64,000 nucleotides of DNA, taken from Paramoeba atlantica. Lineage: Eukaryota > Protista > Discosea. Shown here in pieces: positions 28,475 to 35,537 of the stretch. The stretch is from contig CDRNVI010000019.1 of assembly GCA_977017575.1 (NCBI GenBank), positions 310,001-374,000 on the forward strand. The letters are read 5' to 3'. The notes under the pieces were generated by a model. That model was not told where the DNA came from and searched no databases. It saw nothing but the letters and a program-made list of their open reading frames with translations. The translations under genes were made by a program, and so were the position numbers. Within the stretch, counting starts at the first letter, position 1; each line of letters starts with the position of its first letter.

Positions 28475-29113
28475 GAATATCCTTCTTTGTTTAAAGTAAA
28501 ATGTTCTTTGTCAAGTCTAAAAGATTGAACAATGAAAGTTTGCACAAACATGGACATTTCACTAATTTAAGGGCTGCATGCATTATACGTAGTGAAACCA
28601 CGTATGATAACATAACAAAAAATATGCAATTCAACTACTAGTAATACTAACTAAGTACTAGTAATAGAATAACATGTGGTTCCTTTTTTTAAAAGGTGGT
28701 TCACTCATTAACACACCTACATGTATTTCGGTGTGTTAATAAGCGAAATGTGCTAATACGTTCATCTCATAGCAGCAGTAATAATTTTTGTAATAGAAAT
28801 TATTAATAATTTTTATTATTATAAGAAGGTGAATTATTAATAATTATTATGAGGACTTCTTTAGCCCTCATGGGGCGTATAGTAAGCGTACACATGTGTA
28901 CATCTGGATATTTCAGAAGAGATTCTCGTCTCCCATTTTGTATGTCAAGCCCATTCGATACAGTAGCAAATGATATTCCAGGTTTAACCACGTTAATAAA
29001 ATTCGTTTAAAAAGGGAAAAACGAGGACAATGATAGGAAAGCATTTTAAAGATTATATTTTTCTTTATTTAAATCTTTTTCCTCTTTTTAACAACTATAT
29101 AAAAACTAGCAAA

Positions 29114-29177
29114 CCAACTTTCCCACTTCCCAACCTTCCCACTTCCCAACTTTCCCACTTCCCAACTTTCCCACTTC
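29114..29177. repeat. 16-bp minisatellite x4 (CCAACTTTCCCACTTC)
   Basis: Four consecutive copies with one substitution. The minus strand has regularly spaced GGG tracts. Confidence 0.9.
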
Positions 29178-29339
29178 CCCTTACCGAACTTCCACCTTTC
29201 CAGGGAGGGTAAGGTCTCCCTCTGCCTCGCCTCGCACCTACGCCACAAGAGGGTTTTTGATGATAAAGAAGGGGGGAGGCGAGGTCTTCTCCAATCCATT
29301 CGCGCTCCCATCTTCCTCATGCATGTTCCGAACCGGGTC

Positions 29340-30214
29340 TTTTTTTTTTTTTTAAATAAGACACAGTAAAAATAAAAACAAGCAATCCAGACCCAATCCA
29401 TTCGCGCATTTTTTTTTTTTTGCAGTTAATAAGGGGGGAGAAGTATGAATCGCGGCATTGCCTCTATATTTTGACCCAGTAGACGAACCAAGTAGGTCCA
29501 TTGGGGGGGAATACGAGTTGAAAACAAGTAAATTTTTTTTTTTATATGATTTTAAAACAAGCAATCAAATTAGCAATTTCATATTTTGGAGCCCAAAACT
29601 AGCAATTCGATCTCCCGTAAGTATAAGAACATTAAAAACAATAACAATAAAAACAAGCAATATATGCCCAATCCATTCGCGCGTTCCGGACCGGGTCTTT
29701 CGACCTCTCCACGGCCTGACTTGTGAACCCTTCCCTTGTTATATGGGAGGGCGCAGGCGCGGGCCTGTGTCGACAGCGACACGGTCGCGAAACAGGATGC
29801 TGGCCGACGGGGAGGAGATTTTTTTTTTTTTTTTTTTTTTTTTTTGCAATTAATAAGGGGGGAGAAGTATGAATCGCGGCATTGCCTCTATATTTTGACC
29901 CAGTAGACGAACCAAGTAGGTCCATTGGGGGGGGTATACGAGTTAAAAACAAGCAATCAAATTAGCAATTCTTTTTGTTTCCACAGAGGTACCTTTTGTT
30001 TTTTCTCAGCCCAAAACTAGCAATTTAATCTCCCCTAAGTATATACTACAAACAAGAAACAGTAAAAACTAAAACAAGCAATACAGACCCAATCCATTCG
30101 CGCGTTCCGGACCGGGTCTTTCGACCACTCCACGGCCTGACTTGTGAACCCTTCCCTTGCTATATGGGAGGGCGCAGGCGCGGGCCTGTGTCGACAGCGA
30201 CACGGTCACGAAAC
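29340..30214 (-). repeat. Head-to-tail array of ~400-bp poly(A)-tailed units (SINE-like or small-RNA gene repeat)
   Basis: Units 29819-30214 (396 bp) and 29409-29818 (410 bp) share a GC-rich structured block, an AT-rich spacer and a ~100-bp block ending in an A-run on the minus strand (27 and 13 A). A truncated unit lies at 29340-29408 and a further degenerate head at ~29291-29339. Confidence 0.85.
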
Positions 30215-30259
30215 TTTTTTTTTTTTTTTTTTTTTTTCCTTCCTAATCCCATCGCCCAG

Positions 30260-33200
30260 CTAGCCTCGTACCCCGCGGCGGTACCAGTCCTGTACTGCCG
30301 CCTGTACAATCTGGGCATTACCTTTCTGGATGGCCACCCCTATGGCCATCAGAAGGTGGGACATGCATCCGTTCTTGTCGGATGAGTGAGCCCGGGCCAC
30401 CTTGGTTAGGAAGTTCAAAGTCTCTGGGCCCGGGATCCCATACGTGGTGAATGCCAAGGGGTAAAATTCCATCCCTCGGGCGGTCGCCATCTCATCGTGT
30501 GAGCGCCGCTTGTTGGCCTCTGCCATCCTCAGGGTATGAGAGGGCTCTGCGGCCTCCTTCTCCACGTAGGACGGGGCCAGTGGGTTCACCACGGTGACAT
30601 CAACTAGGGCAGTCTTCCGTCCCAGCTGGAAGCATATGTCGGGCCCCCGTCCATTGTCGAACCTCGGTTCGTGTAGGTCCGGTTTGAAACCATACTGCAC
30701 AAGAAGGTTTCGAAAGGTTTCCTTGACCTCCTTGTGGCGGGAGGCCTGGGTCTTCCCCTTAACCTTTTTGCAATCCAGTGCGTGTACGCAAAACTCCTCA
30801 TTGCGGAGGGTTGCACCGCACACGCACTGGAGCTCAGGTTCCGAGGTGGGGGCGACCAAGTACCGGAGACGGGCCGCAGTCTCCCACTGCGGGTCCCGCA
30901 TGTAATACTCCGGCCTGTTGGGCCATGCGTTCATCCACTTAGTGGAGTGAATGTTCTGGGTCTGTCGCATGCAGACCAGTTGGGTGGCCGTCGGGGCTTT
31001 CCCCAACGCGGCCTCACAGAGGTTGCGCCGCTGTTCCTTGGCTGACATGCCTTGGGGTCGGCCCTGTAGGGCGTTCTTCGCCTTGGCCTGCATGTCTTCC
31101 GCCTTGTGCGCGAAGGGGATGGTCCCCAGGAAATCTGCCGTGAAAAGGTTATTGGAGAACGGCGTTTTTCCCAAGGAGCCCATCCCCCCGAGCAAGGCCT
31201 CAGCACATGCCAGGACGGCTTTGTCGACCTGGGTATTGGCCACTTTAGTGACCGGGGGGTCGTGGGTCCTTACGATGTAGTTCCATCCCACAGAGTCCCA
31301 CAGACTCTGTGGGAGTCCCACAGGACTCCCACAGAGTCTTAAAAGGGGCAAGGCGCATTGCCTGCTAATGTCCTTGAGTTTCCCCAGGAAGGAGATTACC
31401 TTGGGGGCCTTGGAAAGCACCCATTCTTCCTCCCTAGCCTCCGACACCCCGATGAAGGCCCCCAGTAGTTTGACCCCCCCGGGGGAGTGGACCATGCGAG
31501 ATCCGGAGAACTCGGAGAAGAGGTCCTCGCGTCTGGTAGCTACTTTGCATTTAGCAGTATTTAACCGTAGCCCAAGATGCTTCAGCTCCTCGCGGAGGGC
31601 CTCTAGGGCTTCCGCGCAAACCTTGGGTTCACCAGCAAAGGTGACGTCATCCAGGTACGCCCAGACCTTCAGCGTGCCTGTGAAGTTGGCCGCCACTCTG
31701 GCGATTGCCCCCTGGATCCCTATGGCAAATAGGATGGGAGCCATGGGGTCGCCCTGCTTGACCCCCCTTGAGCTCGTGATGCATTGGCCTTCCCCAAGGT
31801 GAAGGGTACTGGTGGTGCCGTAGCTGAACAGGGTGATGCCCTCAATGGGGAGGAGTTTCGGATCCCCCCTTACCGCCCTAAAAATTGCCGACCGTGAGAT
31901 GCTATTAAAGGCGTTCTCGAGGTCTGCCGCCACGATGACCTCCTTCGGCCTGTCCCTGAAGTGCTGTCGCACATTATAAATTATGTGCTCACACCCCTGC
32001 GTGTATTGGGCTCCAAACTGGATGCCCTGAAAGTAAGTGGGGAGATGTTCCCGGATTTTCTCCAGGGCAAGGAGCCCCGCCACCTTGAGGATGCACTCTC
32101 CCATGGCGATGGGCCTGTAGGAAGAGTGGTGCCCCGCCGGGGAGTCCGGTTTGGTGAATAGTTTTAAGGACGCCCCCGTGAGAAGTTCCCTCATTGAGGG
32201 GGGGAGGGAGTTGGTCATTATCCCGTGGATTATCCACGTGATACACTCGCGGGGTCCATCTTCCATGAGGACTGGGACAAGCAGTTCCTTGGTCCATCCC
32301 GTAGGTCCGGGGGCGCGGATAGGGGCCAGGATTTGAGCCTTCCTGGCCACATCGGCGGGGGAGGGTAGGGTTCCGTGTCGGTCCCTGTTGTACCTGAATT
32401 TCCCCGCAGTGTAGGGCCCGCCTGTGGGGTGTAGACGTTTTGCCTGTTCTAGGGCCGCCGTGGGGTTGGCCGGAGGATTGAGGGGCGCCTCCATCGTTTT
32501 GGCCGCCCTGGAGAAGCAACCCGCCCTGCACAATTCCTCGACCCGTTTTTTGACAGACCACGGGGGGCCGTTGGCCTGACTCGGGGATGGAGCCAAGGTC
32601 TCCGAACCCTCTAAATGGGCGCGCATTCTAAGTTCGCGCGCTAGCTGGCGTTGCGACAGCTTGTCCTCGGGGAGGAAAAGGAAACGTTTAACGGCGAGGA
32701 GGAGGTTCCAGGCTATCTCGACCTTGCCCTCCACCGACTTATTAATAAAATCGTGGCATACACCGGCAGTGTATTCCTTCCAAGCCGGGTATTGGAGTGC
32801 GTACAGTTTACGTAAGGACCCCCTCCCCAGGAGCTCTGCTAAATTTTCGGGGGAAGGGGCTTGTCCACGCACCTCAACTGGAGCGCCCTGGGTTGTCGGG
32901 GTGGATTGCTTGTTTCGTGTGGTGGAAGACACTCCCCCCACCTCCGATGTCCCCCCCTGTCCCGTCGTCCGCTGAGAAGTTTTGGGCACATTGGCGGCCG
33001 CCGCGATGTGCTCGATCAGGGTCCCGTGAGAGTGCGGGGTTGGCCCCCCATTACAATGGGATTCTGGATACGGGCCAGCTCTGCAGCTGCCAGCCTCGGC
33101 GCGATCCTCGCTGGCGTCCGGCATGGCCCCCCCCAGAACAGGGGTTGTGGACTTAGGGCCCGATGAAAAGCTGTGGGGTGTCGGGGTGGGCCCCCCATTA

Positions 33201-33712
33201 CAATGGGATTTTGGATACGGGCCCGCTCTGAGGCTGCCAGCCTCGGCGCAATCCTCGCTGGCATCCGGCATGGCCCCCCCCAGAACAAGGGTTGTGGACT
33301 TAGGGCCCGATGAAAAGCTGTTGGGTGTCGGGGTGGGCCCCCCATTACAATGGGATTTTGGATACGGGCCCGCTCTGAGGCTGCCAGCCTCGGCGCAATC
33401 CTCGCTGGCACCCGGCATGGCCCCCCCCAGAACAGGGGTTGTGGACTTAGGGCCCGATGAAAAGCTGTTGGGTGTCGGGGTGGGCCCCCCATTACAATGG
33501 GATTTTGGATACGGGCCCGCTCTGAGGCTGCCAGCCTCGGCGCAATCCTCGCTGGCATCCGGCATGGCCCCCCCCAGAACAAGGGTTGTGGACTTAGGGC
33601 CCGATGAAAAGCTGTTGGGTGTCGGGGTGGGCCCCCCATTACAATGGGATTTTGGATACGGGCCCGCTCTGAGGCTGCCAGCCTCGGCGCAATCCTCGCT
33701 GGCATCCGGCAT
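30260..33712 (-). CDS. Retrotransposon RT-RLE polyprotein, downstream frame
   Basis: RT motifs APGPTGW, YRPIAMGE, DLENAFNS, GVKQGDP, YLDD and GLRLNTAKC. C-terminal CVCG..HALDC zinc knuckle, RH, and GPDI..LVDVTV RLE core. Confidence 0.92.
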   Translation of the reverse strand: MPDASEDCAEAGSLRAGPYPKSHCNGGPTPTPNSFSSGPKSTTLVLGGAMPDASEDCAEAGSLRAGPYPKSHCNGGPTPTPNSFSSGPKSTTPVLGGAMPGASEDCAEAGSLRAGPYPKSHCNGGPTPTPNSFSSGPKSTTLVLGGAMPDASEDCAEAGSLRAGPYPKSHCNGGPTPTPHSFSSGPKSTTPVLGGAMPDASEDRAEAGSCRAGPYPESHCNGGPTPHSHGTLIEHIAAAANVPKTSQRTTGQGGTSEVGGVSSTTRNKQSTPTTQGAPVEVRGQAPSPENLAELLGRGSLRKLYALQYPAWKEYTAGVCHDFINKSVEGKVEIAWNLLLAVKRFLFLPEDKLSQRQLARELRMRAHLEGSETLAPSPSQANGPPWSVKKRVEELCRAGCFSRAAKTMEAPLNPPANPTAALEQAKRLHPTGGPYTAGKFRYNRDRHGTLPSPADVARKAQILAPIRAPGPTGWTKELLVPVLMEDGPRECITWIIHGIMTNSLPPSMRELLTGASLKLFTKPDSPAGHHSSYRPIAMGECILKVAGLLALEKIREHLPTYFQGIQFGAQYTQGCEHIIYNVRQHFRDRPKEVIVAADLENAFNSISRSAIFRAVRGDPKLLPIEGITLFSYGTTSTLHLGEGQCITSSRGVKQGDPMAPILFAIGIQGAIARVAANFTGTLKVWAYLDDVTFAGEPKVCAEALEALREELKHLGLRLNTAKCKVATRREDLFSEFSGSRMVHSPGGVKLLGAFIGVSEAREEEWVLSKAPKVISFLGKLKDISRQCALPLLRLCGSPVGLPQSLWDSVGWNYIVRTHDPPVTKVANTQVDKAVLACAEALLGGMGSLGKTPFSNNLFTADFLGTIPFAHKAEDMQAKAKNALQGRPQGMSAKEQRRNLCEAALGKAPTATQLVCMRQTQNIHSTKWMNAWPNRPEYYMRDPQWETAARLRYLVAPTSEPELQCVCGATLRNEEFCVHALDCKKVKGKTQASRHKEVKETFRNLLVQYGFKPDLHEPRFDNGRGPDICFQLGRKTALVDVTVVNPLAPSYVEKEAAEPSHTLRMAEANKRRSHDEMATARGMEFYPLAFTTYGIPGPETLNFLTKVARAHSSDKNGCMSHLLMAIGVAIQKGNAQIVQAAVQDWYRRGVRG

Positions 33713-33850
33713 GGCCCCCCCAGAACAGGGGTTGTGGACTTAGGGCCCGATGAAAAGCTGTGGGGTGTCGGGTTGAGCCCCCCATTACAATGGGATTTTG
33801 GATACGGGCCCGCTCTGAGGCTGCCAGCCTCGGCGCAATCCTCGCTGGCA
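33040..33850. repeat. 147-bp (49-codon) tandem repeat, ~5.5 copies, inside the retrotransposon ORF
   Basis: The CCCATTACAATGGG landmark recurs at spacings 147, 147, 147, 147 and 146. Copies differ at only a few positions. Confidence 0.95.
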
Positions 33851-34335
33851 TCCCGCTTGGCCCCCCCCTGATGCGGGGGTGTGGGAATGGGGTCTGTAAT
33901 GTGGGGGTCGGGTAGTGGGGTAGGGGTGTCCTCGGTTTGTGTGCTCGTCTGTCCCGTTACGTTCACGGGGTTACTGTCCGCGGGGCCGGAGGATTTGGGC
34001 GTTTTATTCTTCCGTTTTGCGCGGCGTGGTCCCGGGTTGGCTTCGATGCACCCTCTACGGAGGTTACACCGGACTAACTCGGCCGACCACCCCGAGTCAG
34101 CTATCAGTCCCTCCGTGGGCGTGAAGCTCCAGCAAGCCGTTCCGCCCTCCGACGCGAACGGGGTCCAGGCTCCTGCAAAGCACTGGGCTATACCAAGGGC
34201 GTGGCATAGGAAAAAGGGGATATGTTCGCCTGGGAGATCGGACGGCGTCTCTATGCTTGCTCCTGCTCCCGATCCGTCGAAGACTTTGACGTGGGGACCG
34301 TGGGAGGGGCCGTGGTTTGGACTCAGCCTCTCCAT
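33713..34335 (-). CDS. Retrotransposon polyprotein, N-terminal part (out of frame with the RT part by one base)
   Basis: The ORF from ATG 34335 reads the first repeat copy in the same peptide (DASEDCAEAG...) as the downstream frame. The C-run at 33715-33721 has 7 C versus 8 in the other copies. Restoring one base gives a single 1358-aa ORF. Confidence 0.75.
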
Positions 34336-34404
34336 TAGACAAATGAATTGTCTCCACCTTGTGGGCTACTTCCCGTTCTTTTCCCAAAAGCAATTTGCTC
34401 CAAT

Positions 34405-34740
34405 TCACCGATAAGGTATTGTATTCCGAAGGAAATGAGTGTCTTCCTCGTGTTCTTTGCGCGCCTTGCGTCGGTTTAGGTTCTGCGGATCATTAAAAAA
34501 GACTCGCACCATACCCTCAAGTAGGTCGTCAGAAAGATGTCTCTTCTTGTTTTCTATGTGCAACATGTGACCAAATTCGCGCTCCGTGTGTGTTTCGGAA
34601 AAGTGAATCCGGTTTATTGCTTGTCTAAACGTATTTTTGAGAAACAGAACTTCGCCAATAGTTCTCCACAACTTGTCGCTGTGTATCATCAACCACGCGA
34701 TCAAATTCCGACTCCAACCGCGATGCCTAAAAAAGTTGGA
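34405..34740 (-). pseudogene. hAT transposase C-terminal dimerisation-domain remnant
   Basis: SETHTEREFGHMLHIENKKRHLSDDLLEGMVRVFFN resembles S..xERxFS.M..I...R..L....LE.L..I..N. No ATG; the N-terminal part is missing before the TIR. Confidence 0.55.
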
Positions 34741-34952: not shown

Positions 34953-35537
34953 TTAAAGACGTTCTATTTTTGTCCCACTTATGATTAAACAGTGTATACC
35001 ACGCGGTAAGTCATTTGTCACTAACGTACCAGTAAGCTTCGGATTCTCCGACAAACTTAACTGCCGAAGCCCTCGTGGAAGTTTCGCAAATAATATAGGA
35101 CCTGTAAAATCATTTCGCATTAAGTGAAGAAACATTAGATTCGGGGGGCAATCGTGTAAATCCAACGAACCACTAAACCTATTGAATTGCAATCTCAAAG
35201 CACACAAATGACGCGGCAACTCATCGAAAAACACGTTCCCGAATAGTTGATTTGAAGACAAATCGACATCTTCTATAGTTTGAGGAAGTTGTGACCAGTG
35301 TAAATATCCTCGTAGCATTCGACCTTCCCATGAAAGGGCAGTAACTGTTCCGTTGATATTACAAGACACACCAGGCCATTGGCACGCAGGTTCTTGTTTC
35401 GGAAAACGCCAATCGGATTCTTCCACGTCCCTCAGGAAAAGAGCAAGTTCGAATTCTGGCGGTCTTCGAGCACTTATACGAGCTAAACGGGGCCCGTCGG
35501 AGGGATCCTCAGAATTCGCAAACCGGAGAGTAAGCAT
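34953..35537 (-). CDS. Short leucine-rich-repeat protein (family copy 2)
   Basis: PACQWPGVSC cap, then LPxxLxxLxLxxNxFxG repeats; paralog of 23752-24525. Confidence 0.88.
   Translation of the reverse strand: MLTLRFANSEDPSDGPRLARISARRPPEFELALFLRDVEESDWRFPKQEPACQWPGVSCNINGTVTALSWEGRMLRGYLHWSQLPQTIEDVDLSSNQLFGNVFFDELPRHLCALRLQFNRFSGSLDLHDCPPNLMFLHLMRNDFTGPILFAKLPRGLRQLSLSENPKLTGTLVTNDLPRGIHCLIISGTKIERL

Follow-up and report, generated by a model that had tools for sequence, protein, structure and literature searches.

The A-tailed units that lie head to tail behind the retrotransposon in this stretch of DNA are 5′-truncated 3′-UTR ends from at least three lineages of one 4.35-kb LINE, a family different from that of the neighbouring LINE (here called W) whose A-tail they follow. 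What the stack displays is a known retrotransposon behaviour, the nesting of truncated LINE ends on A-tails; unusual are the host and the high frequency. A false lead is removed, in that there is neither a new SINE class nor a substitute for the spliced-leader (SL) array here; what remains is a measurable stacking habit of R2-like, SL-capped LINEs in a kinetoplastid-type protist. The favored explanation, to which we assign a probability of a little under one half (about 0.47), is that the stack would have grown by sequential target-primed insertion into earlier A-tails, with W as the founder at one point of a repeat named Z.

All members of the stack lie on the minus strand of the window, i.e., of the whole 64-kb stretch of DNA that was analysed, and their coordinates are collected in Table 1. 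The exact A-runs were read, and the layout is the one originally drawn: the stop of the W ORF at 30260 is followed by 22 nt, the A23 run and then the units with their tails. The four joints enter one GC-rich head at four different points (GTTTCG, TCTCC, GCGCGAATGG and GACCCGG), so that the claim that each A-run joins another point of the same head was borne out at every one of them. Other parts of the original prediction needed adjustment. The lengths of 396 and 410 bp given for the two larger units are correct if the A-tails are counted and become 369 and 397 nt without them; the extent of 29290-30237 gave the right location, but the stack reaches about 245 bp below that start; and what had been taken for a “degenerate head” is really the 5′-truncated 3′ UTR of another LINE lineage (E5), which runs to about 29045. 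BLAST of unit A against the whole window found units A and B to be 83% identical, and TRF described the stack as a period of 421 with 1.9 copies and 85% matches; in the tail region of E5, it reported a 16-mer array, CCAACTTTCCCACTTC on the + strand. A or T runs of 13 or more are found only four times in the 64-kb window, and these are the four A-runs of the stack (A23, A27, A13 and A14), all on one strand and within 900 bp, a clustering far beyond chance.

Table 1. Members of the stack and the interrupted repeat, in positions of the window.
Feature	Position	Strand	Description
LINE W	30238..34327	minus	Seems full-length; RT ORF 30260-33712, N-terminal ORF with 147-bp repeats, 3′ UTR of 22 nt only
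A23, tail of W	30215..30237	minus	Exact run positions
Unit B, 369 nt	29846..30214	minus	5′-truncated 3′ UTR of one lineage of the parent LINE (LINE1); start ~165 nt past the ORF stop
A27, tail of unit B	29819..29845	minus	Exact run positions
Unit A, 397 nt	29422..29818	minus	5′-truncated 3′ UTR of another LINE1 lineage; internal A11 at 29533-29543
A13, tail of unit A	29409..29421	minus	Exact run positions
55-nt internal 3′-UTR piece	29354..29408	minus	5′-truncated; A-tailed at a non-standard upstream point
A14, tail of the 55-nt piece	29340..29353	minus	Exact run positions
E5, fifth member	29045..29339	minus	Begins GACCCGG (29339); 5′-truncated LINE 3′ UTR; 16-bp repeat in tail region; AT-rich end
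Repeat Z, left half	34331..34703	minus	Interrupted by the stack; copies on contigs C55, C6, C30, C52 and C8 end at the same base
Repeat Z, right part	28755..29044	minus	~319 nt of Z missing in the window copy, kept on contig C43

A search of the genome that contains the window (45.7 Mb, 248 contigs), with unit A as the query, established what the units are. They form a dispersed family and are not confined to this site, with at least 78 scored matches of 650 candidates on many contigs, and in 30 fetched loci most copies carry on with conserved sequence upstream of TCTCC (in the orientation of the units). This upstream similarity extends without a break for more than 1.5 kb into an ORF, the stop of which lies about 140 nt before TCTCC, and the 5′ ends of the copies form a continuous spread with no shared discrete start. 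The units are truncated LINE ends because the genomic copies run unbroken upstream into this ORF of 1266 aa; both collinearity with a full-length autonomous element and a poly(A) tail combined with a variable 5′ end were observed. The joints are retrotransposition joints, as had been proposed, in which an A-tail is followed by a variably 5′-truncated copy. On the reference copy (L034:4150-8502, 4353 nt), unit A starts at ~4023 and unit B at ~4050, both aligned to ~4350, with the starts of the 55-nt piece (~4158) and of the fifth piece (~4142) placed by eye. Unit A matches the 3′ end of a longer copy on C2 (L003) at 100% identity and that of a copy on C60 at 99.5%, unit B has about 40 copies elsewhere at 96-99% identity, and E5 is 100% identical to four copies (two on C16, the others on C47 and C87) and is similar to the 3′ UTR that lies upstream of the L034 LINE. 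A piece like the 55-nt one comes after a tail in L026. Across the family, the points at which A-tails are joined are scattered over the 3′ UTR, and an internal A-run of the RNA is among them. Any target-site duplication at the joints would be hidden inside the A-runs, and the stack as a whole allows one of at most 1-3 nt.

The LINE from which the units derive is autonomous, SL-capped and R2-like, with a restriction-like endonuclease (RLE). Its intact copies (L033, L034 and L035) consist of a 4.35-kb element with the single 1266-aa ORF, in which Pfam found RVT_1 and whose best relatives among solved structures are R2 proteins. The end of the ORF in L025 carries a CCHC finger (CPADGC...H...C), RHN, and RPAD...LDFAV...K, a PD-(D/E)xK nuclease motif; the order of an RLE-type LINE, i.e., RT followed by CCHC and PD-(D/E)xK, is therefore present, with the nuclease motifs read by eye only. 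At its 5′ end, the element has the spliced leader copied into DNA (...GATACAGTTTCTGTACCTTGTTG) and joined to the 5′ UTR, and this junction has 253 occurrences genome-wide; in the whole window, the SL core is absent, as was stated from the start. The best 120 relatives of the ORF include no named CRE/SLACS protein, the named ones being sponge hypothetical proteins, and no named clade was obtained from the ESM Atlas or a large protein search.

W is a LINE of a different family. Its ORF matches Pfam RVT_1 (E=4e-20), its best solved relatives are again R2 proteins, and CCHC/nuclease-like motifs were read by eye from the nucleotide sequence at its C-terminus. At least six genomic copies begin at the identical 5′ base, the many copies in the genome are 94-100% identical, and copies on C12 and C185 match the 3′ 659 nt of the window copy at 100% identity. 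Elsewhere, the A-tails of W are joined at slightly varying points, and unit pieces or an SL head come next. The RT of W shares 27% aa identity with that of the parent LINE, and no DNA similarity of W to unit A was found, the 3′ ends included, BLAST of unit A against the whole window giving no other match either, so that W did not hold up as the partner of the units. The N-terminal coding part of W (33035-33868) contains a 147-bp repeat in 5.7 copies with 96% matches (TRF).

The insertion site could be followed through copies of Z and through a sister contig, C43, which aligns collinearly with 20 kb of the window (98.5-99.4% identity), carries the same stack with A-runs that differ by one base, and looks like the other haplotype. 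The recurrence of the stack on this collinear contig means that the array is real and no assembly artefact; public short-read contigs (2,001 letters, from four runs of one study) were short and broke at the A-runs, so that the array was not confirmed by reads. C55 and C6 carry Z as a contiguous sequence; going by match coordinates, the matches to its two halves are 1 nt apart there. Since both halves adjoin there, the whole stack of 5.3-5.7 kb appears to sit at a single point of Z, with a change of the target that would amount to at most 1-3 nt. At window position 29044, C43 has 430 extra nt, made up of further A-rich tail, a 64-nt piece with an A25 tail, and the ~319 nt of Z that are gone from the window copy and kept on C43, C55 and C6; the window copy later lost these 430 bp. 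The 64-nt piece (L031:9529-9592, minus strand), absent from the window, is an additional member of the stack, which comprises W plus four pieces in the window and W plus five on C43. It was also found with both boundaries the same and at 98-100% identity on C75, C19:589377, C94 and C12; Rfam gave no match to it, and it may derive, by retro-copying, from a discrete short RNA. A short ORF of Z was considered as hAT by an eye-read likeness to a C-terminal motif and was dropped, Pfam being without a match. Directly upstream of Z and the stack lies a leucine-rich-repeat-like ORF (34953-35537, minus strand) with weak Pfam LRR matches below the curated cut-offs.

Stacking is a genome-wide habit, in that about half of the LINE tails directly carry another LINE 5′ end. 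Of the A-runs of at least 10 that come after a recognisable LINE 3′ end in the examined loci, 32/55 have a same-strand LINE piece within the next 14 nt (27/50 when the inherited internal joint described below is left out), and 59 of the 114 SL-headed 5′ ends on the reverse strand, each site listed once, have A8 or more at most 20 nt upstream. All four joints of the stack studied here would fit a newcomer sitting on an earlier tail in the same orientation. In at least 32/45 cases, the partner upstream of a LINE piece is itself the 3′ end of a LINE, in loci that were picked via LINE ends. The relative ages of neighbours were compared by nearest-neighbour identity in 59 loci only, a noisy test with members that are mostly all young; a gap of more than 3% was seen in 6 of ~22 well-sampled pairs, and in L010, for example, the upstream element has 90.8% and the downstream element 100% nearest-neighbour identity. 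For the present stack, each member is 99-100% identical to copies elsewhere and no arrival order is visible. The mean length of the A-runs is ~20 nt for internal and terminal runs alike, and these lengths do not discriminate between insertion into tails and template jumping. A filled and empty pair, with a member present in one locus and absent in the other, was not found among allelic or duplicated locus pairs.

According to the favored sequential reading, the poly(A) of the LINE RNA would pair with a T-tract at the nicked target and thereby prime reverse transcription, and the A/T tract supplied by the tail of an earlier element would be the best landing place genome-wide. W would have inserted first, at the one point of Z, and the short pieces would have arrived later, one by one and in the same orientation, most of them breaking off in the GC-rich structured part of the 3′ UTR. 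If each next copy landed on an earlier tail in this manner, every joint would consist of an A-run and a different head point, which is the head-to-tail pattern described above. The attachment points of the A-tails vary, and therefore initiation by A:T pairing fits better than recognition of a fixed 3′ end. L1 and Alu elements insert into older A-tails. A precedent is found in the nested clusters of the LINE Zepp (PMC3446292). The truncations in the stack are internal and short, unlike those of classical end-to-end jumping, LINE tails predominate as upstream partners, some neighbour pairs elsewhere are unequal in identity, and the tails of W, too, bear LINE pieces. There are also points against it: five further insertions on a very young founder are a lot to ask when all members are 99-100% identical to copies elsewhere, the filled and empty pair was missing, and it gives no account of how an RLE nuclease would nick in A/T tracts.

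R2-type RTs jump between templates and give head-to-tail products in cells (PMC11371274; PMC8857657), which counts against sequential insertion. Alternatively, the stack would be a single composite cDNA from one event of target-primed reverse transcription, in which the RT stalled in the structured 3′ UTR, jumped serially between poly(A) RNAs and ended on a full-length W; we consider this a close, though less probable, rival. R2 proteins jump from a finished cDNA to further RNAs (PMC11371274; PMC8857657), the 5′ junctions of R2 products in cells have the 3′ end of one template abutting the full-length or truncated 5′ end of the next (PMC11371274), and double template jumps were inferred for a fungal LINE (PMC2104539). 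Jumping would agree with the single point of Z and its target change of at most 1-3 nt, with five or six members that are equally young, with R2 as the closest solved structure of both LINE proteins, and with the 1-7 nt of extra bases found at many joints. However, classical R2 jumps take place at the 5′ end of the template, whereas four or five of the switches here would be internal, after 55-397 nt, and the last template would nonetheless have been copied for 4.1 kb. Abundant cellular mRNAs would be expected as acceptors, yet the partners are so often LINE 3′ ends (in loci selected for LINEs), and some neighbour pairs elsewhere look unequal in age. A genome with both haplotypes in the assembly could separate A-tail-targeted insertion from template jumping in vivo, a question of current interest for R2-based gene-insertion tools.

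A wider version of the single-event explanation draws on the 3′ UTRs themselves. The internal A11 of unit A is flanked by a duplication of ~22 nt, is common to at least five copies (L003, L004, L009 and L016 among them), and is a fossil tail-to-head joint inherited inside the 3′ UTR of this lineage; transcription can therefore pass through a stack, which is then copied as a single 3′ UTR. In addition, a module of ~240 nt in the 3′ UTR (L034:8090-8330 and homologues) keeps 93-98% identity across lineages that are 50-76% identical in the adjacent ORF ends, a discordance that reflects either strong constraint (e.g., a protein-binding RNA element) or exchange of modules by read-through. One module in diverged lineages hints at a possible RNA recognition element; in 12 copies, RNAalifold found double changes at only 5 pairs, for the most part owing to a single diverged sequence, and the copies are too alike for a structure to be tested. 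On the basis of the fossil joint and the discordance, stacks might be seen as concatemers that an RLE-type RT produces in vivo in one event, by serial template switching, with read-through letting lineages swap or acquire 3′-UTR modules. We regard this as doubtful; if true, stacking would offer retroelements a way to evolve in modules and to be mobilised in trans, in a genome where every RNA is trans-spliced and polyadenylated.

Growth on the 5′ side, as in the original prediction, with the tail of each newcomer attached to the 5′ edge of the previous element in the manner of telomeric or break-healing insertion and with W as the latest arrival, is improbable. The order and the variable truncation do match the HeT-A/TART arrays of Drosophila (PMC5537684), and W, the member farthest to the 5′ side, is intact, with 100% identity to other copies. 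It is rated low because the site is internal, between both halves of Z, in a contig of more than 600 kb with no open end; moreover, non-native 3′ ends such as that of the 55-nt piece are not expected from erosion, and no age gradient was seen.

The original prediction had proposed a new SINE-like family growing beside its autonomous partner, or else a tandem small-RNA gene repeat replacing the SL array as the target. That the units are a true non-autonomous SINE-like family with a promoter of its own, mobilised by W, was suggested by their being short, non-coding, abundant and A-tailed, with a strongly conserved head, and is now very improbable. Instead of having a 5′ end of their own, the copies lead upstream, collinear with the LINE, into the RT/RLE ORF; the units have no similarity to W, tRNA, 5S or 7SL, and the candidate thus lacked both a discrete 5′ end and a head derived from a small RNA. 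The fold of the head gave a z-score of only -1.36, which is not significant, Rfam returned nothing at gathering score in the whole window and chance-level matches only in the region at E up to 10, and ARAGORN found no gene. Least probable of all is that tandem small-RNA genes, or an error of assembly, account for the array: the TRF period of 421 bp is set against units that are only 83% alike and come from different dispersed lineages with different start points, there is no match to an RNA family or tRNA, the structure came out of the assembly a second time, independently, on C43, where the A-runs differ slightly in length, and SL genes are not the target of the LINEs, which bear the SL at their own 5′ end.

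Several known systems resemble the stack in part. Higashiyama et al. reportedly described in 1997 that Zepp copies attach to the poly(A) tails of older ones and are 5′-truncated to varying extents. A-tailed, variably 5′-truncated LINE copies in head-to-tail piles of one orientation are shared with Zepp, which forms nested LINE clusters in Chlorella and Coccomyxa (PMC3446292). In contrast, Zepp is an L1-type (APE) element that nests in itself with about one cluster per chromosome, whereas several RLE-type families are mixed here in stacks on many contigs. The L1-type “dead-on-arrival” copies are 5′-truncated and insert in older A-tails; A-tail-dependent priming, truncation and the preference for A/T tracts are common to both, but the endonuclease is of another type and the share of tail-to-head joints (about half) is far higher here.

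In their mode of action, the elements resemble R2-type LINEs that make use of poly(A). They have the single large ORF, the central RT and the C-terminal CCHC and PD-(D/E)xK of R2 and other RLE LINEs, with R2 as the best solved-structure match, and head-to-tail products are documented for R2 proteins (PMC8857657; PMC11371274). R2 is specific for 28S rDNA, has its own 3′ UTR recognised and lacks poly(A), whereas the present elements are A-tailed at variable positions, dispersed and SL-headed. Poly(A) tails and internal repeat regions also mark the CRE, SLACS and CZAR elements of trypanosomatids, which are likewise RLE LINEs of kinetoplastids; insertion in the CRE clade is at one fixed position in SL RNA genes (PMC12278014). 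In the parent LINEs, by contrast, the SL is at the element’s own 5′ end, fused to the 5′ UTR; the flanks differ from copy to copy, and the SL head is often preceded by the A-tail of another element. Because the flanks vary and the SL is on the RNA and not in the target, these LINEs do not belong to the SL-gene-specific CRE/SLACS/CZAR group as defined (PMC12278014).

The 3′ part of the spliced leader was also found joined to another sequence, GTACATTTTGC..., in 163 dispersed occurrences. Four loci of this family (L056-L059, i.e., C2:38803, C3:18104, C3:71391 and C3:184361) start at about AAGATACAG and have unrelated upstream flanks; the GTACATTTTGC family is another SL-headed retroposon family and does not represent SL RNA genes. 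Elsewhere in the genome, retroelement sequence forms tandem arrays of fixed period (C21:272-11710, C22:137441-155727 and C55:290688-308923), with SL-headed junctions every ~2283 bp on C21 and C22 and 3′ ends of the unit B lineage every 4470 bp on C55.
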